Assembly: GCF_947568905.1 (NCBI RefSeq)
Contig: NC_079168.1
Coordinates: 36,146,001 to 36,210,000 of the forward strand
Direction: 5' to 3'
DNA: 64,000 nucleotides
Source of the DNA: Ostrea edulis
Taxonomy: Eukaryota
The translations under genes were made by a program, and so were the position numbers. The number at the start of each line of letters is the position of its first letter. Positions within the stretch are counted from its first letter, which is position 1. The notes beneath the pieces are model-generated. The model saw only the letters and a list, made by a program, of their open reading frames with translations, was not told the DNA's origin and ran no database searches. Below, piece by piece: positions 1 to 48,117 of the stretch.

Positions 1-1135
1 CCTCAAAAATAGAAGAAAATCAAAATCCTTGCCACATACACATCTTGAATACCCATACAAACATTCTGTAAAATAAGGTCCTCCCTTGAAAAGTGGTAGG
101 AGTTAATGGACAAATGATGTACCCTCCATATAACAATAATTTTCAAATAAAGTGGCAAACTCCTGCAAGAGAGGTTGAAATGTATCAAAATTGCAGTATG
201 GTCTACAGTGATCCACAAACAAGCTACATAGCAAGTCTCAGCAGGTTATGTTAGAAAGAAATGAAAAAAGAAACAAAACTCCATATGGACAGATGGAAGG
301 ACAGACATACAGACATCACTGTACCGTAATCCGAAGATGGGTGTATAAAAAGATAATGACAAAACTAAATGCTTGTTTCCACAAGCAACCAACATAATGA
401 CTACACAGATTATTGTATTTACAGGTACAAGTGTACAATGTATATACACATCCCTGTACTTTGCTCATAACTTTTGCAATAATAGACGGAAATTCAGAAG
501 ATGAATTCACAGTCTTTTTGACAATTAAAAATGCAAGTTCTTGGCTTTCTAATAATCAAGACATTCATTCATAAACTAAAAAAATTATTTCAATGCTATC
601 ACTTTCAGACATTTACAAGAACATATATTACACACAAATTCACGCACAAACATGAACAACCTCCCACTTTCTTGGTAACTATATAATAGTAATAGTATTT
701 GACAGCTAATCTATATTATTCAAAGGTTTTGAAAAAATACATATCAACAATTGATATAAAACAACACAATAATCCAAATGGCTCCATACTAATAATTATA
801 TCACTTATTTTGTTGCTCATTTTTATCATTTCTAGGATATTACTTGCAAATATGACATTGCTTTTAGGCTTCCACTTTTGTAAAACATTTCTTTTGATAG
901 TATTTAGTATTTATTTCATTTGCATATTTAAAGAGAAGCCGCTTTAATACATTTGATCATCTTCCTCACTGTGTGTAGATCCACTCTGTCCCACTTAAAA
1001 ATGCAGGCATTCAAAGTTCCACTACACAGAAGAGCTCTTATCTCAAAACTGGCATATTACAGATCACAGTGACCATGGTACTGTGAGCGATATGGCAGTC
1101 CTACAAGCTGTAGCTAGTGGGAAAAATTAACACTT

Positions 1136-1198
1136 TGGCTCGAATGGTAGAGTGCTGGACTTGTGAGCCAGAGACCCGGGTTAAACTCCCATCAGAGG
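1136..1198 (+). mobile_element. tRNA-derived SINE head fragment
   Basis: A-box-like tggctcgaatggtagag and B-box-like ggttaaactcc; no complete cloverleaf. Confidence 0.5.
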
Positions 1199-1751
1199 TA
1201 TAAAAGATGTCTCTGTTACATGACCTTAATGAAGGGTGTGACAAACCTTCTAACTGACCAAGTTTGATGATTCTAGGCCAAATAATTGTTCAGTTATGAG
1301 CCAGACAAGGATTTTCCATATTGGCCATATCATTTTGATTAAAGGTCACAGTGACCTAATTCAAAATGCAACACACCCAAGATGAATCAGCTGACAAAGT
1401 TGATGAATCTAATCCTCATAGTATTTTAGTTATGAGCCGAACACAAAAAAGCTAACACACAGACAGATGAAAATGAATGCCATACTACAATATGTCCCGT
1501 CTTAAACAGGCGTACAAAATCTGATATAGTCAGCCCCATTGTCAGCTTGTCTTGTATAACTTTTGATCTTATCATAAATAACTAATTTGAAGTCTGTAGA
1601 TTGATAAAACGGTCGACAGAAAGATTGAACACAAAGATTACAACTGGACTCCAACATTTTCAATGCAGCTCTTAATACAATGCATTACAACTCATATAAA
1701 GCAACAAGTAGTACTACTAACAATTTGTAACTGGCAAAAAAGTTAACTTAC

Positions 1752-4700
1752 GTCTGGTTTCATGCCCTCCTCCTGTTTTTCATCATCAGAGTCATTCTGT
1801 TTTTCCTGTATATAGAAAAAGTATATATTACTGAAGGTAACAAACAGAACTAAACAACCCATAGGACAAAACACCCACTGAATTATGGCAGATTTCACCA
1901 GCTTTCTATTTAAGTCTCTAGTTTGAAAGACTCGAAACATTAACTAGGCTCCCTTTACATAGAATTTTCAAAATTTACTTCAGACCAACACAATGGGGAG
2001 CAAGTACACCAAGTTTGGTGATCCTCACCTTATTAGAACAGTACTGTTTTTCCTTCATTACCCATGAAAGTTTGTCCTTAACCTTTGACGCAGTTGTGTT
2101 AAGTAGGGCCATAGAAATATATCAGGAAAAAAGCATTAATAAACAGATCAATTTGTGACAAATTCTGTAAACACAACCCTTTTATACAAAAACAATATGT
2201 ATATATCATTAAGTGCATATTGACCTCTTATACATTTTTCACCAGACCGACAACCTCAACATCAACTCTCTATCACATGATCAAATATCAAGATAAAAAC
2301 GTATCGTGTATGTATAAATCATAGAATTAGCACGATATCCAGATATCAATGCAAGTTGAAGTTAAAATAACTTCAAAGCATATTAATTTCTTAATTTGAA
2401 AAGTGCTGAGAGCAAGTTTATTGTGACTTGCAACATGTCTAATTTTTGCATTGAATATGCAAGATGCAGCGATTTTTGCACATATGAAGTTGAATCTAGC
2501 CTGAAAAACATATTTTCTGTTGAAGTCAGAACTTGCTCCCCTAACTTTCCTTTGGCACTGAAGTTCACATGTCACATAAATCAGACATCTTTCACTTAAA
2601 AACCTCGGGGTGTTGTGCCAATGATGAATTTTTTATGTACGGAAACCCTGTTTATGCAAATGAGTCCATTGTGAAAGTAACTATACGTGTAGATTAGGGG
2701 CGATATCAATATCACAATATAATATGGATATTACTTTAGCATGTATGTTAGATAAAGAAGAAATTGAAACTTTTTCAATATCAAAGAGAATTAATATAAC
2801 CCATTTGACAGAAACTTTTACGCGATTGCAGTTTACCGTTTGACAGCGGTGGTAAATAACGAAACAATATTTTGACATTTCCAACCACAAAAGGACTGTA
2901 GATATGTACGTCATGACCTTCGTCATGACGTAATTTTCATTGTGACGTTGTGCAATGTGCCAGTGCGGTAAAGTATATTTATGTACAGCACTGGTATTCA
3001 GGGCCGTAACTGCCGATGAGGCAGACGAGGCAACTGCCTCGTCTGATTTTTTGGCAAAAAAGAAAATAAAATTATATAAATGTTATATTATAGGATATAT
3101 GTTTAAAATGAAGACAAGCACCTTTGTCTTTGACACCATATTACGATTCTTTACATAGTACAAATGAAACACAAACATGATAAATTGGGATTTAAAAAGT
3201 GTCATTTTCAGTCGTAAAGTCAATCGGCGGCCCCCAATCCCCTGCCTCCCCTGATTTAGAACCCTACTTACGGCCCTGGTATTAAAAATTTTATGGGGAA
3301 AGCCTTAACTCAACCGCGGACCTTATGAAATAACAGGCATTAATCTCTCACCATGGGGAGTGTGTATCAGGATGGATTATCCTAGTCTTATTAGTACTTT
3401 TTATCCTCCTCACAAGGTGCTGACGGATAAACAGACACACACACAAAACACTGTGCCATGCCATAATATGTCCGGTTTATGACGGTTGAATGTGTATGAA
3501 GTTTGATAATCCTAGCCTTATTAGTACTGTTTCTATCTTGTTTTGTGCCTGTAAAATGACCCATGTAAGTTTGACCTTGACCTTTTGCTCTTGAAAAAAG
3601 AATAGGCTTCTTCTAATAATTGGATATATGTATACCAAGTTTTATTATCCTAGCCCTATATGTAGTTTTTATCTGACCCACAAGGTGCTGACAGACAGAA
3701 ACACAAACAAATCTATGATGTTTGATTATACATGTATATATCAAGTTTGATTATTCTAGCCTTATTAGTACTGTTTCGGAGGAAGGGGGCTGTGCCTATA
3801 AAATTAATCCTGCCATATAATTTGACCTTGACTTTTAACCTATCACCTTGAAAAATGCTAGGCTTCTTCCTCTGATCATGAAGAATATGTATACCAAATT
3901 TGATGGTCCCTAGTCTTATAAGTTCTGTTTTTATCTGATCCACAAGGTGATGAAAAACAGACAGACTCGCTACGCCATAATTTGACCCATCTACGATGGG
4001 CATATCAAAATATGTGCAAGATACTTGGCACTTGTCATGCAACCATTCTTTCCAAAAAAACATACAGATATAGACAGATATTTTAATATTAAAAAAACCT
4101 TATAGCCTATGGTTTCTGTGAGCCGAAAATGAAACAATATTGAAAATCTTCAATTCTATACATCACCTGTTTTGCTAGTGTTGCTGGGTTCCCTTGTGCT
4201 TTCTCATTTTCCACTGTTGTTGATTCTGTATAGGAGAACATTTGTCAAATAATCAAAACTATAAAAAAGTCTCTTTTTTTCGAAGTAAAATTTAAAAAAA
4301 CTCTGAACACTTTCTAGAAATATTTCGACCATGTTACCGGTCTTCTTCAGTCATGTTTATCTAAACACGGTCAAAATCTTTCTAGAAAGTGTAATCAAAA
4401 CTACATATATATGTATGCATCTCTTGTACAATCATTGTCCATCTTTCAAAACTTCATAAAGTTAATTAATAATTATGTCCAATGATTGAAAAGACCCATT
4501 AATCCCCAGGTTGGATTGTCTGGTGAAGTGTCATCCCTAATTACAAAGTTGTCAAACCTTGTTTTGTGAGCTGTTAAAGATGGTCTTCTGGTGAAATCCA
4601 TGGGATGATATTTATGTCATGAGTGACTAGTAGCTTATGTAAACATTTAGCACTTAAAAGTATGGAGAGTAAAACTTCAAAGGATTATATATAGCAGGAC

Positions 4701-7700
4701 TAAATTTTACTTTGAGGGATTTCAAAAGATCAAGATTTAAAGAGAACAAGAGATCAAGAACTTTGAGAGATCAACATTCAAAACATTCAAGAGTCAACTG
4801 CAGATACAAATAAAACATAGCAACTTGACATGTTCCTGTATTTAAATACATGTAACTTCATTATCTTGCACTACAATAAATCCATTCAGTAAACTCTATT
4901 TTTGTATTGAGATGTATTATATTAATATGTTTACGGTGTGACCGTAGAGATGAGCGAAGACCCATAACATCTTACAACACGACTTGAGCCAATTCATTTA
5001 ACGCGGGAAATATTACGCGGTTGATGTAACCAGTGCATTGTGAGTCATCATTAACAGCGATTGCTTTTCTTTCAAATCAAGCAATTATTTACAACAAAAC
5101 GCACAAAGGTATGGGAAAGCTAAGCTTGTCTGGAATTTAAAATCATTTGTGGTACTTTCCAAACTATTTATTTGTTTTATCTAAGGGGTTGTCAATGAAG
5201 TATACCGCAGTGACGGCGACATTCTCCGGAAGCATTATGGGTAGTCTCCATCATTTTTCAGCTGATGAAGAACAAATCACATGATTCTATTGCATAATCA
5301 TTGGAGCTTCGCTCACTATAAAATATACTTGAAAACACAATAAAAACATAAATGCCAAACAAAGTTTTCTTACCTTCAATAATAAGCTCTGCTGTAGGTT
5401 GCAGTATGATGTCTACAGACTTGGCTTGACCTTTGTCCTTTTGCTGCTGTAACTGTTGCTTTGCACTGACAGGTCTGGCATTCTGCTGGTGTTGGCCCTT
5501 CTTACCTTTCTTCTTTTTATCCTCCTTTTTAGCACCTGCTGACTGTGAATTATCATATCCAATAAGCAAAGTAATTCTAATGTTTACAAATGGATGTATT
5601 AAATGCAACTCTAAGCTCAGTTACAAAACCAATTTTCCAATTATTACATATGATAATGTACCGTATATACTCGCCTATAAGTCAGATTTTGGGGGTTAAA
5701 TTTTGGTCCAAAACTCTATGTCCGACTTATAGGAGTGTCCCAAGAAGATTAGTATTTTTCTGGATGGCGTAATGTATAGCCTAGTATTTTTTAAACAGCA
5801 AAAACATGGACGAAATAAACAAAATAGTAATTGTTTAATTTGTTGAGAATAAAAAGTGAAATATTGATGTCATATCCCAAAACATTATTGGAACACAGAT
5901 AAATACATAAGAGTTTTGATATGAAATTCATTTGTTAGGAAAAAATATCAAATATTGGCACATTTCTCAAAATATTATTTGAAACACAGGTAAAAACATT
6001 AGAGCATTAATTTGAAATTGTCAACCGATTCTTGAAAAAAGTTGGACCAACTTATAAATGAGTCAATGGCAGTTCCCTCCAAAATAAAAAACCTATAGGC
6101 GAACCAACTTATAGGCGAGTATATACGGTAAAACAATTTTTATAACATTCAAGCTTTAGTTTGAGTGACATGAATTTCCATAGTCATTGAAAAGAAATTC
6201 TTACTGCTAAAATTTCCATCCTGAGTTGTCTTTCTTCATCATCTTGATCTCCATATTTATCTTTGATCTTCTTCAATTTACTCTGCATGCAGAAACATGA
6301 AAATGAAACAATTAAAGATTGGATATTTTAACATACACATACATGTGCAATAGACCAACAATGCATTCAAAAGTGGTTTAGTATTAGGGCATACAATAGA
6401 TTTCTTATAAAACGTGAGCAATTAATTTCGTGAAATTGCCAATTAACATGAAATTGCAATCATGAAAAATTTTCAATGCTACAATGTATATTCTGAAGGA
6501 CTTAATTCTTTGTACATGTATGTGTGTTGATAAAAAATTAAATGCTAAAGTTTTGATTTTGCAAGAGAGGCCTCAATCGAATTAATGTAAATATCAATTA
6601 TTCATATATGCACATACATGCAATAGGGAATCTATAAATTGCAAAATTTGTGCGCTATATCAGAAGCTTTGCAATAGATTATGTACATTTACAAAACACA
6701 CTGTATATGTACTACAGAGTAGCATTGTGGACAGATCTGATATGCATACCTTTTGTTTATGGTAATTTACTGACATGTTGATCCTTAAACCTATATGTAC
6801 AACAGATGTGCAATTTAACATAAGTCTTACCCTTTGTCCTCTTTTGAATTGTATCTGAGCCTGCTTTTCAACAGAATCCAGTTCATTAGAGTCTGATTTT
6901 GGATTGTGATCTTGCTTTGACTTCTGTGTTGACTGGTTCTCTTTCACATCTTCTCCTAGTACCCTGTCCTTATCTTGACGAAGCCAAGATACGTTATCTT
7001 CCTCATCCTCTTGGTTCTCTTTCTGTTGGTTCTGGACTCTTTTGGCTTTCTTCATTTCCCTTCAAAGAAATCAACTACATCATATATGTACTCCAAGAAG
7101 CCATATTCTATAAATGAAACTGGTGCTCATTAAATTTGAAAGAAGACTTTAAAAGGCAATTTTACCTCCTTTGTTTTGCTGATATTTTTGCTCCTCTACC
7201 TCCTGTCTAAAATACAGAATTTTAAAAGTTGTCTCATCTTAATCAATGAATGAACACCAAAATGCAAACATGTACAGTTTCAAATCGTTTATATGATGTC
7301 AGTGTTATTACACATTGTAAGCCATATCGCAGACCATGCCATTGAATTTAAAAAATAAATTGATATCTAAATCAACTAAGTCCTGTAAGCTATAAATTCC
7401 CCATTTTATAGTATCATTACCTGTAGTACAGGTGTCATTTCCTTCTTCTCCGGATCCTCCACACTGCCACTCGTATTACTCCTCTCTCGCTGGAGCTCAA
7501 ATCTAAACAGGTACATGTATGTCATTGATTTAAAGGGGGAAAAATGTACATGTTGAGTATATATAAGCCTTCACATGCAACCTAAATATCATGGTGCAAG
7601 AGTTGTCTAAAACATGTGATATATTATTAAGTGTTTTCTGATGGAAACTTTCCTAATTCTTGGTTACATCTATCAGTCTAAGCACTGTGCCTATCTTACC

Positions 7701-10700
7701 AAGGGGAAAATTTGACGGTATCGATAGGATTTGTGGCAACAGCCCATATTAAAGTACAAAGGTTTCATTTTATGACTTTAGTAGCAATTCCTGCATGAAA
7801 TCCCTAATAAGGATGAGAAAATTGCAAAAACCTGTTCTATAATTTTGAAAGTGCATATTGAATTGTTTTGCTAATTTCAAGATGTTTGAGTCAGTGGTGA
7901 TTGTTTAGAACAAAAGAGAATCCGTGCATAATTAGGAGATGCTAAACAACATCAATGAATGATGCCACAGAACGTCTGACAGTTAAAAATTTCATAATAA
8001 GGAAATTCATAGATAAATAACAGGAAACCAGATTTAATGGACTTTGTGTTTTATACAGCATTACTGTGCAATGGGTTGCAAACAATCTTTATAAAATTGT
8101 TTTAATCTGATGATAATCTGATGATACTCTTACAATTTAGTATATAGGATCAGTCAGATTGAAAATACATGTGAACCACTCCTTTTTTCTGTCCAAATGA
8201 GATCCTGTGCGAATATGGTGTGACTTATTGGAGTTTTTTTGCATGCAATATAATCTACTTTTTATCTTGATTTAAACATCCTCATTCAGAGTGTTTTGAT
8301 TACAGATATGTTCTAAAGTTGTTTTCCTCCAAAGAAATGTAATTGAAATTCTCAGAACTGATTTTGAAAAACATTTTTGGCATAAATAAGATACCTATAT
8401 TCAGTCTGTTCAGATAAAAACCCAATTTTGTGTACCGAAACATGAACGTTCAGTCACATTTATTTAATTAAAGAAAAATACGCAATTTTATCATAGTAAA
8501 TCTGTACATGAACCTACACTTCATAAATTCACTTGTTCAGGAATTCTTTAGACAACCCTTCTATCTACATTTCACATAATTGACATGAATAAATATTATG
8601 AATGCCTTTTGTCAGTTGTCAATGTGAAATTATTCCTGCAGTTGAGACTTACTTATCTCCCTTGACATGTTGTAATGATATTGATGTGTCTGGAAACAAG
8701 TTCTTCTCCTTATCGTCTTCCTCCTTCACTTCCTTTTTATCACTATCTTCACCTGATATTTTTCCATTTTTGTCTACACATTGACAATCACCATTTCCAT
8801 CTGTTTTACTTTCACTATCAGTCTGAGGCCTTTCGCTGTCTTCAGTACTTTCACTTCTGTTGTAATTTTCCTCTGTCTCACTATCACTATCACTGTCTGT
8901 GTCTTGATTCACACTGTTTGTGTCGGCAGTCAGATCACTCTCTGTTGCTATGGAGTCTGCTACTGATATGGCATCATCCTCCACTTTGTGGACTTTCCGT
9001 TCTCCTCTATGTCTCTCTATGCTGTCATCCTCCAACTACAATCAAAAACAGGAACAATATGAAATTACTCTCTTCTATGTCTCTCTATGCTGTCATCCTC
9101 CAACTACAATCAAAAACAGGAACAATATGAAATTATTCTCCTCTATGTCTCTCTATGCTGTCATCCTTCAACTACAATCAAAAACAGGAACAATATGAAA
9201 TTACTCTCTTCTATGTCTCTCTATGCTGTCATCCTCCAACTACAATCAAAAACAGGAACAATATGAAATTATTCTCCTCTATGTCTCTCTATGCTGTCAT
9301 CCTTCAACTACAATCAAAAACAGGAACAATATGAAATTATTCTCCTCTATGTCTCTCTATGCTGTCATCCTCCAACTACAATCAAAAACAGGAACAATAT
9401 GAAATTACTTTCTTCTATGTCTCTCTATGCTGTCATCCTTCAACTACAATCAAAAACAGGAACAATATGAAATTACTCTCTTCTATGTCTCTCTATGCTG
9501 TCATCCTCCAACTACAATCAAAAACAGGAACAATATGAAATTATTCTCCTCTATGTCTCTCTATGCTGTCATCCTCCAACTACAATCAAAAACAGGAACA
9601 ATATGAAATTATTCTCTATACTTCTTAACACTTTCATCTTCCAGCTACAATCAAAAAGTATAAAAATTATTTTCCTCCATGCCTCTCTATTCTATCATCC
9701 TCCACCTAAAACTGTATGATGTCCATTTTTGAGAACTATGTCCACACTTTTATAATATGAGAGTCTATCTATGAAATAATGAATAATACAGAAATGTACA
9801 TTCTGTAACTTCTTGCATGCATTCAATACAATGTAAATCCCTGCAGAGTATACAAGGGGATTAGCACGAGAAGCATGTGTGCATTGTATTAGATACAAAA
9901 TAGTACCTTACCTTGAACAGTAATCCAAATCCATAAACAAGGTGGGAAGGTGGTAGGTAATTCTTTTTACCTATTGAACACATGCAGACATATAAGTTAT
10001 GTGAACCTCAATTTGATTTTAATAGCATCCTCAGATCTGCTGACATTGTTGCCAACTATACAACAATATTGAAGGAATTTGATTTCAGTCAGGTTGTGGG
10101 AATTTTACAGGTTGGTAAAGTGGGCCTCTCCATGAGAATTTTGTGATATTTGTGATATTTTCTATCATAATGGATTACCATCATTTGTGTCATATCTAAC
10201 ACAGACGTATATGCAACAATGTTATTGAATTTCAATGTAAATCTGGTGAAACTTTAGTCAGACACTTTTAAATGTGGAGCAAATCTTCACAAGAAATTAT
10301 TTGTAAAATATTAATTGTATGATTAAAACTAAGTATAGGTATTTGCCTCACATACCAAGTTTTTTAAATATCTATTGATATCATATCATCATTTTCACTA
10401 TAACATTGGAGGCCTGTGCCTCAATGGACACCAATTTTCTTCTAGCATTATTCTGTTCAATTTTATGTAAATACTGTATGACTATAATACCTGTAAATGT
10501 AATGTTTAATGATACAACGTAAAGTACCCATGTAAAAATGTAATACTATGGTACAATGTAAGAGTCAGGTTTCTACAGTCAGCATTGGAAATATGCAAGC
10601 GATATGCAGTTGTGGTGTATTTAAACTGTTCTGGGAGCTAATGTAGTATAAAGATGTGAATATATATCAGGAGGTGGGAGATATACTCTTAAAACCATGA

Positions 10701-43057: not shown

Positions 43058-44472
43058 TATGGTAACAGTCTTAAAGAGAAGGATGTTTCCCCTTTGCAAT
43101 AAAATTTCCCTCCAGAGAAAATGGCTTTACACAGTTAGAGTAAAATTAACAACAACATCCCTGGGAAAACTGGCTTTAGAGTATTATAGGAATTATAACT
43201 CCGCCATGAAAATCCCTCTGAAGAGAGTCGGATATACGCTCCTCTTCCCTTTCACATTTCAGCCGTGACTCGCGACGATGGCTTCCCAATCTCTGTCTCA
43301 ATTTTCAATCAGTGCTCACCACAAATGCTCTAACGAACAATATTTAATTATGGCGGAGATTGACACCAATTACAAAATTTTATATGGATTTATGCATATG
43401 TTTAGTGCCTCTTTTTACTTAAATGTAAGATTTTAGTTTTAAACCAATTCAAAAGATGTGTTGGAGCAACACAAATGCCCTGTCTAAGGGCCAAAAACTA
43501 TGTTAAAAGTTATCTGACCGGTCACATATGATATACCTACCATATATACCTGTATCCCAAGTTTGAATTCAAAATATCCGGCCATGTATGACTTGAGATA
43601 ATGAGTGGAAACTGAATTGTTTGAAATTTATCAAGTGAAAGGACCAACAATAAGAAGTCTTAAGCCTCACAGTGTGACATTTACATGTATGATTTAAACA
43701 CGATTTGAGTATATCATTTTCCAGGAGGCCTATTTGGTTCGTGACACACACTCGCGCACAGTTCCGATTCATCAACAGAGCAAGTTTGTATGGAGCACCA
43801 AAGTAACATCAACAGAAATATTTGAAGAAATCGTTAATTATTTGAGGATACCATTGATTCAATTATTGCATACAATAATTCAATTGCTACCCACATCAAA
43901 TTATAATTATTGCTCTCATCAATTGAATTGATGCGCGCATCAATTGAATTATTGCACACATTTTAAAATTGATTTGATGCGCGCATCTACTGACATTGCG
44001 GGCAATAATAGATGTGCACATCAATATTGAATTATTGCTGGCAATAATTGAATTGATGGGCACACCAACTGTTCAAAGTATTGTACACAGTAATTGAATT
44101 GATGCGTGTATCAAATCAATTATTGTTCTCATTAGTTATAAATTGATGAGTGCTATCTATATACAAAATAATTATGAAAAATATTGCTTAGGTTAATTTT
44201 TCTTAAACATAAACTTTTACGTTGTACAGACAAACTGTATATGTCAAAAACTTTGGTACTAAAAAAATTTCTTGTCAAAGGGAATGCATACATGATGAAA
44301 GTAAGGCACAGTGTATATCACTCCCATTTTCAAAAAGTTATGAGCAAGGTTAAAGTTTTGAAATACTGGTCAACCTTCAAGGTCAAAGATCATGGTCTGA
44401 AATGTAAGGTCTTGTCATGAAGAATCTATATACAAAATATGAAACCTCTGGCTTGTGTTGTCCAAGTTAGGT

Positions 44473-47400
44473 CCCGTACCAAACATCCTAACAAATGCTC
44501 ATGAGCAGCTCATGAGAAGCACATAAAAATCTGGTAAGAATCGTATGCAAATTAGTTAGCATTTAATTTTGCTCATGTGCAGATTGTTAGTCTCTGTTAG
44601 GGAGGAAAATACTAACCAAAATGCACATATGCAAAATTTTGCTCACCTGAATGCTCATGAGCAAAAGTCGATTCAAATTGCTCACATAAGCAACTGGCTA
44701 TCGATGTTGGATTAATTTTTCTAAGTTCAACTTTCTCACGTGAGCAAGAGGTTAGGAAATTGGACTTAGTCAAAAAATGAGAGTGGTAAAAATTCACCTT
44801 TATATCGTATAATTTACATATCAGGATTTTATCCAGGTACGTTATTCTGGTTTGTGGAATGCTAATTTATACTAAGTTAGAATAATCTAAGCTGTATACC
44901 AAAGTAGGTCTTCATGGGGCTTTACGGCTCTATGCATCGTAAATAGAGATCGGGTTCAATGCGTCGGGTGTGGGATTCACACAATATATGCTGAGCGCGA
45001 AAGTTGATTGACAGGCGCCATGATGTTATACCGGTAAACAACATTTTGAACATGAATCGAGAACAGGAGTTGAATCAGTTGATGCAGATATTCTGAGGAG
45101 AATCTTCCAGTCATTGAGTAAGTGAATTACTGTGTGTCTTATAGTTATAAACTCTGTAATATATTGTTCAAAACGAAACTGACCATCGCTCATATTGTAT
45201 GTTGTTGCGTCAAATCTTGCAAGTCAGTGTTTACGTTCATACATTCAATTCTTTGGAATTATGTGGAATTCATTTTTTTTTAAATTTCCTTTGTATGAGA
45301 TTAGACTCCTTCTAGTTGCATTATCGTAGCCCTCGCGGATTTTTTTCCTTTATACATTAGGACAGGACCATAAGGCACTTTAAAAAATGGAGAGAGAGAG
45401 GAAGAAATGCCGAAAAACAAACAAATAATTAGGCACTATTTCCGTAATACTTATGCTATTTTTTGTTTACTTTCTACTCGGGTGATGATTTGCAAAACTG
45501 AATTAGTTTCTTAAGTAAATGGTGTTTTTTAATGAATGGTTGATTATTTTTTTTATTCAAATGCTTATGATTTGAACCCAGATGTCCAGTTAGAAAAATT
45601 AAACTGCATTATGATCAGGGATGTGACCTCCGGAATCTCAATATTGTCACTACATCAATGCATATACGTTATTAAAATGGATTGAAGATCTTGTCTTGGC
45701 AATAAAGTTAATTTGTATGTAAAGTCGGGTCAGCGTGATATTAACAGTTGAGCATCAGATATTGCATGTATTGGCCCAATGGGCTGTAATGCAACATTGA
45801 TTATTGCTCGGCTTTGAAAATCGGTGGCCCCAGGTGACGGTAATTACATGTACACACCACAGAATGATTCCTCCTATGTTAGATGCCTTGCAAACTTGTA
45901 TATAGGAGGGCCAATGGTATCTCGTAATTATTTAAAATTTGATATCTTTTTCAGAATATATTTCATGATAGTCGTGCAGATTCAGAAGTTGTGATGGTGT
46001 GTTGATAGGCTGTCTTCAACTTGCCATATCTGAGAGTTCCAACATGCAGGCCTGGATTATTGTGTATAAATCACTAATGAAGTTACTTAGTGTTATTTAG
46101 TTTTTTTTAAAAAGAATGACATTTCAATTTATACACACTTGCCAAGTGAATCTGATGAGACTGCTACATGTATTTGGAAGAATCAATAAAAGAAAGTGTC
46201 AATCTTGACCAGTTTTTCCAGCCTGGAGATGGGAAGGTATGTAACATTTACACATTTAATGAGTAAGTTCAAATCATTCCTTATATCAATTGTAAATGAA
46301 TTTAAACATTATATTGCTGGTATATGTTTATTTGCTTGAATGACATTCATGACTGACTGTAAAAAAAAAAAAAACTAGACTGAACTTAATGTAAAATTTG
46401 AACAGATAAAACTTGTGGAGGGACAGTCGCTATACATTGATTCAGTGAAGCTGGCAATCCTGAAGAGGAAATGCAAGAAAAATGAAAGTAAAACTTTAAA
46501 AGCTTTGTTGGACTTTTACTTTACACCAAAGTACCTCGCAATGCACTCTGCAACAGGAGAGAAATCAGCAAAACCAGGCTTACCAGTGAAAGTTGTAAAT
46601 CCAATTAGAGGTATGTTCATTGTGGGATCAAAATCGGTTGATGTTTGTTATAAAAATTCTAATATAGTAGCAAATTATGTAAATAAATTTTAAAAAGTTA
46701 CATGTATAATTAGCTATTTTATTTTTCAGATTACATGCAACAAAGTTTCAAAGTGGATGCCTCTACCTTAAATGCAATTATCAACCGGAAGTGCTTGGAT
46801 GCAAAGAGATCCAAAAAATGTTGACGATCAATGTCTATATTGACTGTAAAATCTCTTCATAAATACAGTAAAAAATGTAGAGCTAATGAATATGCTGTGT
46901 GTACAAACATAAGTAGGGAGTTATTTTGTTGCACATAATATAATATACTAGGTGTTAAATGATTGATTTTAAGTAAAAAAGTGAATATCACTGTACATTT
47001 ATGCAAGTATTTACATGCTGCTTAAGATTAATGGCATTTATTGTTTTAAATTTATATTATGCAACTACTTCTTTATATAGTGATTCATGTCAGTTTATCA
47101 ATACTACGAGTAAAATTTTGTGTAACTTTTCATTTGAATTAATTGTGGTGTTTTCTTAACTTTAAACAATATGTACAGGATAATTATGAAAGTTTGCAAT
47201 AATGTCTATAGTTTTTCCATATGCCAGTAAATTTCAGTTTTGTGTTGTTTGGAAATTTTATTATCTCAGAACTTTCCACATGTTCCTATTAATATAATGT
47301 TCAAGAATGTATAGAATTATATTTTTATAATGACATATGTAATTATGTATAAATGTATAGAATTATATTTTTAAAATGACAGATGTAAATATATACTGGT

Positions 47401-47649
47401 GTTGTAATTTCAATTTTTCTCCGTTGTCCTTGAAGTGAGAAACTGTGGCACATGAGGCTCATGAGCAAAACTTTTGGTGAGCGAAAATATTCCTCACGTG
47501 AGCAAAAAATCCTCATGTGCAGAATTTTGCTCACGTGAGCATTTCACCTAATTTGCATGTTAAATTGTTCATAAGACTCACGTGAGGAAATCTTGTTAGT
47601 CCTCACGTGAGCTTCTCATGAGCAAATTGTGAGAACGTTTTGATATGGG
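44473..47649 (+). mobile_element. EnSpm/CMC-like DNA transposon derivative (3177 bp) carrying a BEN-domain gene
   Basis: Ends are CCCGTACCAAA... and ...TTTGATATGGG, forming an imperfect ~45-bp TIR. A 2-bp duplication GT lies at 44471-72 and 47650-51. Clustered palindromic subterminal motifs occur at both ends. The element is inserted in a HINE-like element. No DDE transposase ORF is visible. Confidence 0.75.
46168..46824 (+). CDS. BEN domain-containing protein (transposon-borne), at least 122 aa, 3 exons
   Basis: Exons 46168-46236, 46406-46610 and 46730-46824 (GT-AG, in phase) give MYLEESIKESVNLDQFFQPGDGKIKLVEGQSLYIDSVKLAILKRKCKKNESKTLKALLDFYFTPKYLAMHSATGEKSAKPGLPVKVVNPIRDYMQQSFKVDASTLNAIINRKCLDAKRSKKC*. 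The pattern LL..F...LA.HS.TG....P.L....V..I....I..KC...R is typical of BEN domains. Upstream exon-like pieces (about 45020-45117) appear frame-disrupted. Confidence 0.72.
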
Positions 47650-48117
47650 GTGTTCTTAAAAGTAGGCCGAACTCCAGAGTCAAAGTAAAAAGGTAACTTT
47701 GGTATCATGTAATAAAGGTGTTGTCACAAGAAAGGCACATCTGTCCTATATTACACACCATTCAAAAGTTATGAGCAAGGTTATAGTTTCAGACAGACAG
47801 GACAGATCCAAGATATGTCCCCTCCAACTGACTTTAGTTTCGGGGCATAAAAAGTTAGGTACGTTTGCATTTTCATATAATTTAATGTAGTTTAAAGAAT
47901 TTGTTTTGATCAACTTCCTTAAATTAATATTCCCATGTAAAACTTCAATCTCCTATGTGGCCAGTCTGATTAAAACCATGCAGCCCACCTTTTTCTGACG
48001 ATAGGAGAACCTTGGGGGCTGGTTTATGACGATAGGAGAAGGGGTTCTGGTTTTAATCAGACTGCTATGTGGCAACCCAACTCGGGGGACCCTGAATTGA
48101 AAACAACTAATTTGCAC

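Follow-up and report, generated by a model that had tools for sequence, protein, structure and literature searches.

The stretch of DNA analyzed here (the window) comprised 64,000 nucleotides of Ostrea edulis contig NC_079168.1, positions 36,146,001 to 36,210,000 of the forward strand. Window positions 44473-47649 are occupied by a 3,177-bp DNA transposon with imperfect inverted ends of the form CCCGTAC...GGG. Very probably it is a non-autonomous element derived from a bivalve CMC (CACTA/EnSpm-like) family; it retains a remnant open reading frame (ORF) for a BEN-domain protein and was moved in trans. The transposon is real and has moved very recently, with 2-bp target duplications, and its placement as a CMC/EnSpm-type, non-autonomous derivative is supported by comparison with related loci. 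On the same comparisons, the BEN gene is a resident accessory gene of the CMC lineage. A previous annotation, made from the letters of the window alone, is referred to below as the sequence-only reading.

The element starts with CCCGTACC at 44473, a longer reading of the start being CCCGTACCAAAC, and finishes with ...ATATGGG at 47649. The left terminal inverted repeat (44473-44520, + strand, first letters CCCGTACCAAACATCC) was aligned with the reverse complement of the right end, where a right end region (47338-47649, + strand) includes the right terminal inverted repeat (last letters GATATGGG). The two ends form an imperfect inverted repeat over approximately 35-48 bp, as the sequence-only reading had described. 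The CCCGTAC terminus is common to three relatives (L045, L046 and L062). Matching GT dinucleotides, to which no strand was assigned, were found immediately outside the element at 44471-44472 and 47650-47651; these had already been taken for a target-site duplication (TSD).

The genome (894.8 Mb in 52 contigs) was searched for further copies bounded by the same termini, as the sequence-only reading had proposed. Two more full-length copies were recovered, at C2:52776299-52779522 (minus strand) and C5:62083488-62086707. Each of the three copies carries its own 2-bp direct repeat (GT in the window, CA and AG in the other two), and the chance of three matching dinucleotides is approximately (1/16)^3. 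The flanks of the copies are mutually unrelated, similarity ends exactly at the CCC and GGG termini, and pairwise identity is 99.3-99.5% (substitutions only). Three near-identical copies with unrelated flanks and individual 2-bp repeats therefore identify a real, recently moved transposon. When the left 302 bp and the right 1,473 bp were searched separately, the three copies and a handful of diverged ends (73-81% identity) were returned, and the final 136 bp of the element are 73-80% identical to ends at seven other loci. No transposase was found in the element, in agreement with the sequence-only reading: no ORF exceeded 92 amino acids, and a tblastn search of the element with a family transposase returned nothing significant (best E 1.3).

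The BEN gene lies on the + strand in three exons. Exon 1, a remnant, spans 46168-46236 and is followed by a GT donor. Exon 2 (46406-46610) encodes an N-terminal extension and the first half of the BEN domain, contains the motif HSATGEKS and ends in phase 1; exon 3 (46730-46824) encodes the second half of the domain and closes with a stop codon at 46822-46824. The exons are in phase, both introns are of GT..AG type, and the product is the 122-amino-acid protein that the sequence-only reading had assembled. It is identical, letter for letter, to the RefSeq entries XP_048732734.1 and XP_056010410.1 ('uncharacterized protein', Ostrea edulis). Both introns, the splice sites and the whole BEN domain are intact in all three copies. 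The 3' non-coding region of the gene extends over 46825-47337 (+ strand). A 46-bp tandem duplication (47306-47397, 87% identical) begins inside it, in the 3' non-coding part of the element.

Exons of the window gene were searched one by one, and whole-protein results were taken from the identical RefSeq protein XP_048732734.1. Against Pfam BEN (PF10523) this protein scored 32 bits (cut-off 23.2; E 1.5e-7), with profile positions 5-76 spanning residues 56-113, which confirmed the BEN identity proposed for it. Exon 2 alone matched the first half of the profile with an E value of 0.029, and the homologous exon 2 of two paralogues gave values of 0.0024 and 0.00077. A profile built from the three exons and searched against PDB returned the BEND6 BEN domain as best match (E 4.5e-4), followed by NAC1 BEN domains; the RefSeq protein itself returned three PDB matches in total, all of them BEN chains (BEND6 and NAC1). 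A single-sequence AlphaFold model of it had a pLDDT of 42 and was unusable. Relatives retrieved by word search were limited to the RefSeq protein, a read-through ORF of the window itself and two Logan fragments, one of them the degraded copy described below.

The BEN gene had been described as kept intact. This did not hold, as only the BEN domain part is left. Exon 1 of the relatives found at C6:81.81 Mb and at C1:27.0 Mb (L056) comprises at least 92-99 open codons and ends ..YFQPADGK, followed by the GT donor. Exon 1 of the window keeps the last approximately 20 codons, and the N-terminal part, at least 75 codons, is missing. The first three codons of the window ORF, ATG TAT TTG (ATG at 46168), come from a foreign fragment, and BEN-gene sequence begins directly after them, at 46177. 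With its first codons taken from filler and only the last approximately 20 codons of exon 1 left, the 122-amino-acid protein is thus a chimeric, nearly bare BEN domain.

Constraint on the gene was assessed against the homologue at C1:27.0 Mb. Exon 2 is 66% identical between the two, with a proportion of nonsynonymous differences (pN) of 0.20 and of synonymous differences (pS) of 0.84, the latter saturated. Outside exon 2, exon 3 and the terminal 136 bp, no DNA similarity is left between the two loci. Together these results argue that the BEN gene has been a functional part of the transposon lineage, and that purifying selection acted between lineages. The signal of selection looked for across copies was accordingly seen in part: it was present between lineages but did not reach significance among the three young copies (p = 0.12).

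CMC affiliation, as put forward by the sequence-only reading, was supported through the ends. The left end region (44473-44774, + strand) is 96% identical over its 302 bp to an end at C1:109569215-109569526, the closest partner found. Just inside that end, on the opposite strand, lies a Tnp2-type transposase. Its alignment to an intact 828-amino-acid ORF elsewhere in the same genome (L061) covers residues 77-828 of that ORF. L061 matched PF02992 (Transposase family tnp2, TnpD type) with an E value of 1.1e-11 and also contains DUF4218. C(2)C, H(3)H and E transposase motifs are hallmarks of CMC elements (PMC12730594), and they read CWKC, HQLVH and FSFED in the intact ORF and CPCC, HLLLH and FPFED in the partner. 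The partner's transposase is a pseudogene: it has one frameshift and three in-frame stops, and a nested insertion of 5.3 kb interrupts it at approximately residue 502. Neither a right end nor a BEN gene was found within 19.7 kb of it. The next best transposase is 65% identical to it and also broken; the remainder are at most 42% identical.

Features expected of a CMC element were compared with those observed. A PF02992 transposase is present in the relatives L061 and L062 and absent from the window element itself. The TSD is short, 2 bp in all three copies and in L062, against 2-3 bp in CMC elements and 2-5 bp in the wider CMCT clade. Subterminal repeat arrays are present at both ends. As in non-autonomous deletion derivatives, ends are shared with a transposase-bearing element, a transposase is lacking, and several copies with TSDs exist.

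An autonomous partner carrying both a CMC transposase and the same BEN ORF had been anticipated. This was realized in part. A degraded relative at C6:81.81 Mb has both genes, in the order left end, transposase remnants (antisense) and BEN exons 1-2 (sense); neither exon 3 nor a right end was found there. At C1:27.0 Mb, homologous BEN exons 1-3 lie near a right end, and of these two relatives only this one has exon 3. Homologous exons and intron positions were also found in L058. The intact relative, L062 positions 5-8107 (C5:82590005-82598107), is an 8.1-kb element with CCCGTAC ends, terminal inverted repeat CCCGTACGAAAT and TSD AT. Its 834-amino-acid transposase (PF02992, E 3e-13, plus DUF4218) is encoded close to the left end, in antisense. 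Close to the right end, in sense, is a multi-exon, weakly BEN-like gene, interrupted just before a (D/E)Y by a phase-1 intron whose place in the alignment is equivalent to that in the window gene. The L062 gene was likened to the window gene by position, orientation and intron placement only, and sequence homology between the window BEN domain and the L062 exon was not supported. The closest partner of the window element, by contrast, is the pseudogene-bearing locus described above.

Homologues of BEN exon 2 occur at seven loci in the genome: the three copies, C1:27.0 Mb, C6, C9 and C4. The three copies and the loci on C1 and C6 lie approximately 1-8 kb from family-type ends and the C9 locus approximately 7 kb from one; no family-type end was found near the C4 locus. 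Because an intact relative has a weakly BEN-like gene in the equivalent place, and with pN well below pS between lineages, the BEN gene is, as far as these comparisons go, a resident accessory gene of the CMC lineage. The proposal of a BEN accessory gene in a bivalve CMC family thus stood for the family, in which the gene evolved under purifying selection between lineages; that the window copy has kept the gene intact was not supported.

Further details were recorded for the BEN-bearing relatives. The exon 2 homologues at C4:7083443-7083643 (L058) and C9:21120757-21120921 (L059) have 49% identity. Exon 3 is open in the C4 copy, which also has a conserved acceptor; the C9 copy, the one approximately 7 kb from a family-type right end, is frameshifted. 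On the reverse strand of L056 (approximately 1704-1710), exon 2 is followed by G|GCAAGT in place of GT, either a GC-type donor or a dead splice site. A Logan contig from run SRR14865109 (L063, positions 363-1076) holds a degraded BEN-gene copy with a frameshift and stops. It has 75% DNA identity including introns and reaches further into exon 1 than the window does, and the contig has no CCCGTA terminus.

The segment between the left end region and the BEN gene is foreign. Element positions 303-1704 (window 44775-46176, + strand) gave at least 39 matches elsewhere at 89-95% identity, and belong to an unrelated, non-coding, high-copy repeat of more than 4.4 kb. Other copies of this repeat extend at least 1.5 kb beyond both sides of the segment. 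Since similarity continues on both sides in those copies, the segment is best read as a 1.4-kb internal fragment of the longer repeat, and a complete nested transposable element at 44775-46176 was ruled out. No ORF of at least 90 amino acids was found in one parent copy (L006, C5:58482462-58486860), and no convincing microhomology was found at the filler junctions. Transposon-family DNA in the element is therefore limited to 302 bp on the left and 1,473 bp on the right. A sub-repeat of approximately 180 bp was seen on one side of the parent repeat (L006 3855-4397; parent copies L004-L030).

Two short palindromes are concentrated in the end regions. Within 44473-44774, CTCATGAG occurs at 44498, 44509 and 44654 and CTCACGTGAG at 44735; within 47338-47649, CTCATGAG occurs at 47458 and 47615 and CTCACGTGAG at 47493, 47530, 47577 and 47602. 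These are the only occurrences in the 64-kb window, five of each word, all within approximately 300 bp of the element ends; 0.96 and 0.00, respectively, were expected in the window as a whole. Related ends carry motif variants CTCA(CA/TG/CG)TGAG. The ends of the L062 family are free of both words and repeat AGGCGGA / AGACGGA instead. The pairing of family-specific end words with family-specific BEN or BEN-like sequences, compared across two families, suggests a fit with a TnpA-like role. By analogy with TnpA of plant En/Spm, it is quite possible that the subterminal palindromes CTCATGAG / CTCACGTGAG are binding sites of the family BEN protein, and that this protein assists or regulates synapsis of the ends. 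An improbable extension is that BEN serves as a family-specific end-recognition factor of a 'half-autonomous' element, one without a transposase but with its own BEN domain, which would mark its own CTCATGAG/CTCACGTGAG palindromes and borrow the transposase of active CCCGTAC-tipped families whose own BEN-like proteins would read AGGCGGA-type words. Such an arrangement would explain three 99.4%-identical copies from a family without an intact transposase.

The following history would account for the structure of the element. Members of the family end in CCCGTAC...GTACGGG, duplicate 2 bp of the target and carry palindromic words in subterminal arrays. The ancestral element would have had two genes, the transposase beside the left end in antisense and the multi-exon BEN gene beside the right end in sense. 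The DNA from approximately 300 bp inside the left end to the middle of BEN exon 1 would then have been lost and replaced by the 1.4-kb filler copied from an unrelated repeat, probably by aberrant gap repair after excision. Both ends and a chimeric 122-amino-acid ORF, essentially a bare BEN domain, are what is left. This composite was then mobilized in trans very recently, giving the three copies. Because no transposase more than 65% identical to that of the partner is intact, the mobilizing enzyme was probably supplied by a partner that has been lost or is missing from the assembly, or else by a related intact family with the same CCCGTAC(C/G)AAA tip. The truncated protein might help, compete or be inert.

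A number of results weigh against this account. Termini of CMC elements are 5'-CA..TG-3' 'in most cases' (PMC12730594). These are not present in the window element, the ends there and in the relatives being CCCGTAC... and ...GTATGGG or GTACGGG. No intact close transposase was found in the assembly. The BEN-like exon of L062 gave a non-significant hhalign value against the window BEN domain (E 0.31), and it had no Pfam BEN match. Four public runs contain the stretch, as DNA contigs that keep both introns and lack the 46236/46406 and 46610/46730 joints, and the run search returned no RNA-labelled run containing it. The three young copies show one exon substitution (Val to Ala) where 3.7 were expected, which is not significant at the p value given above, and the truncated ORF may simply have had too little time to decay.

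In a possible but less probable reading, the 122-amino-acid ORF is an inert remnant. The deletion would have spared the 3' BEN part because it adjoins the right end, which is required in cis, and the frame would be open only because the copies are young. In favour of this, the native N-terminal part is gone and the start codon is supplied by filler DNA. The copies are 99.3-99.5% identical with an exon substitution deficit of p = 0.12, the runs examined gave no transcript evidence, and the protein collection held no spliced-ORF contig outside RefSeq. Set against these is the preservation, in all three copies, of the whole BEN domain with both introns and splice sites, and the NCBI pipeline models the same three exons independently at two loci. 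That the BEN-only protein acts as a repressor is unlikely. Lacking its N-terminal part, it would occupy subterminal sites and damp transposition of its own family, as the KP protein does for P elements; retention of the BEN domain only, where relatives have a long N-terminal region, and the density of palindromic words in the end regions are consistent with this, but the family is low-copy and largely dead.

Two further explanations concern the origin of the gene and of the copies. Capture of the BEN exons from a host gene, by transduplication of the kind seen in Pack-MULE or gene-capturing CACTA elements, is very unlikely as an alternative to their being a gene of the family. The element does hold captured foreign DNA at 44775-46176, and CACTA elements often take up host fragments (PMC8195511). 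However, a homologous gene with matching start and end of exon 2 lies near the right end of L056, exons 1-2 are present in the transposase-bearing C6 relative, and of the seven exon 2 loci five are approximately 1-8 kb and the one on C9 approximately 7 kb from family-type ends, only that on C4 having none found nearby. An origin of the three copies by segmental duplication, and not by transposition, is negligible in probability. Only their low copy number would favour it, and it was ruled out by the unrelated flanks, the sharp CCC/GGG limits and the private 2-bp repeat of each copy. A non-autonomous CMC derivative with a remnant BEN ORF was thus retained as the preferred reading.

This derivative resembles maize En/Spm and other plant CACTA elements in several respects. 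Autonomous relatives encode a Tnp2/TnpD-type transposase (PF02992), a second gene lies inside the element, arrays of short subterminal repeats are present at both ends, TSDs are short, and non-autonomous derivatives with foreign DNA are frequent. TnpA of En/Spm binds subterminal repeats (PMC8195511). The second gene in the oyster encodes a BEN-domain protein and not TnpA, no match to PF03004 (Transposase_24, TnpA) at E <= 1 being found in XP_048732734.1, so that the two are related by analogy only. In addition, the BEN or BEN-like gene of the C6 relative and of L062 is divergent, on the strand opposite to the transposase, whereas TnpA of En/Spm is spliced from a common transcript. The TSD is 2 bp in the oyster and 3 bp in En/Spm, and the termini are CCCGTAC and CACTA, respectively.

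Other systems share single features. The Mirage branch of CMC has a 2-bp TSD in the Repbase classification, and the oyster elements resemble it in this and in their CMC-type transposase. To our knowledge, Mirage elements have not been described with a BEN gene. PIF/Harbinger elements likewise place a separate DNA-binding accessory protein, there a Myb/SANT ORF, beside the transposase, but differ in transposase superfamily, in DNA-binding fold and in their 3-bp TWA TSD. The KP repressor is made by internally deleted P elements and is a fragment of the transposase (THAP domain). Like those elements, the oyster derivative is internally deleted, lacks a transposase, encodes a DNA-binding fragment and would be mobilized in trans; unlike KP, the fragment comes from a separate accessory gene, and repression in the oyster is a hypothesis only. 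Several BEN proteins bind short palindromes, as the proposed recognition of the element ends would require. The oyster protein shares with the cellular BEN proteins BEND6, NAC1, BANP and Insensitive/Elba a BEN domain, above the Pfam threshold, but is found in a mobile element, in three near-identical copies, and at 122 amino acids has no partner domains.

In the literature searched, no paper linked BEN domains to CACTA/CMC transposons or to bivalves, and none reported, for animal CMC elements, a second end-binding protein comparable to that of plant CACTA. Dependence of a transposase on such a second protein is known classically from the plant elements. In the oyster, a lineage combining a Tnp2-type transposase with a BEN gene would represent an independent solution to the same problem. 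It would also provide a naturally occurring series of BEN proteins whose candidate cognate sites lie in the element ends, and a plausible route for the spread and domestication of BEN DNA-binding modules. The value of the window copy itself lies in a recent mobilization event and a minimal, BEN-only protein that is directly testable against two short palindromes.

The insertion site, assigned to a HINE (Helentron-associated interspersed element) in the sequence-only reading, lies in a repeat of very high copy number. A search with the element flanks gave at least 861 candidate copies, and the contig depth of the flanks is 100-1000x that of the element. No usable paralogous empty site was available among the host-repeat copies, as similarity is lost 17-28 bp before the insertion point. 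The host repeat (44299-44472 and 47650-47800) consists of modules spaced 250-310 bp from one another, with divergence among its copies setting in at approximately 44444. Part of the left flank recurs in the right flank, with 78% identity.

Additional features were noted around the transposase-bearing loci. The 5.3-kb element nested in the partner's transposase gene (C1:109562533-109567869, L052/L051) has a perfect 15-bp terminal inverted repeat, CCCCTGCGAAAACAT, and no clean TSD was found for it. An ORF within it (L052 3710-4048, minus strand) encodes a coiled-coil stretch and a BEN-like '..FTTEEVLGCSRTGKK' motif; it had no Pfam BEN match, and a BEN identity for it was dropped. At C1:109569526-109569640 (L044/L048), a tandem duplication takes in the terminal 46 bp at the partner's left end together with approximately 68 bp of flank. 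A second 834-amino-acid transposase ORF in the opposite orientation (C5:82588414-82589130) adjoins L062, so that two copies appear to abut.

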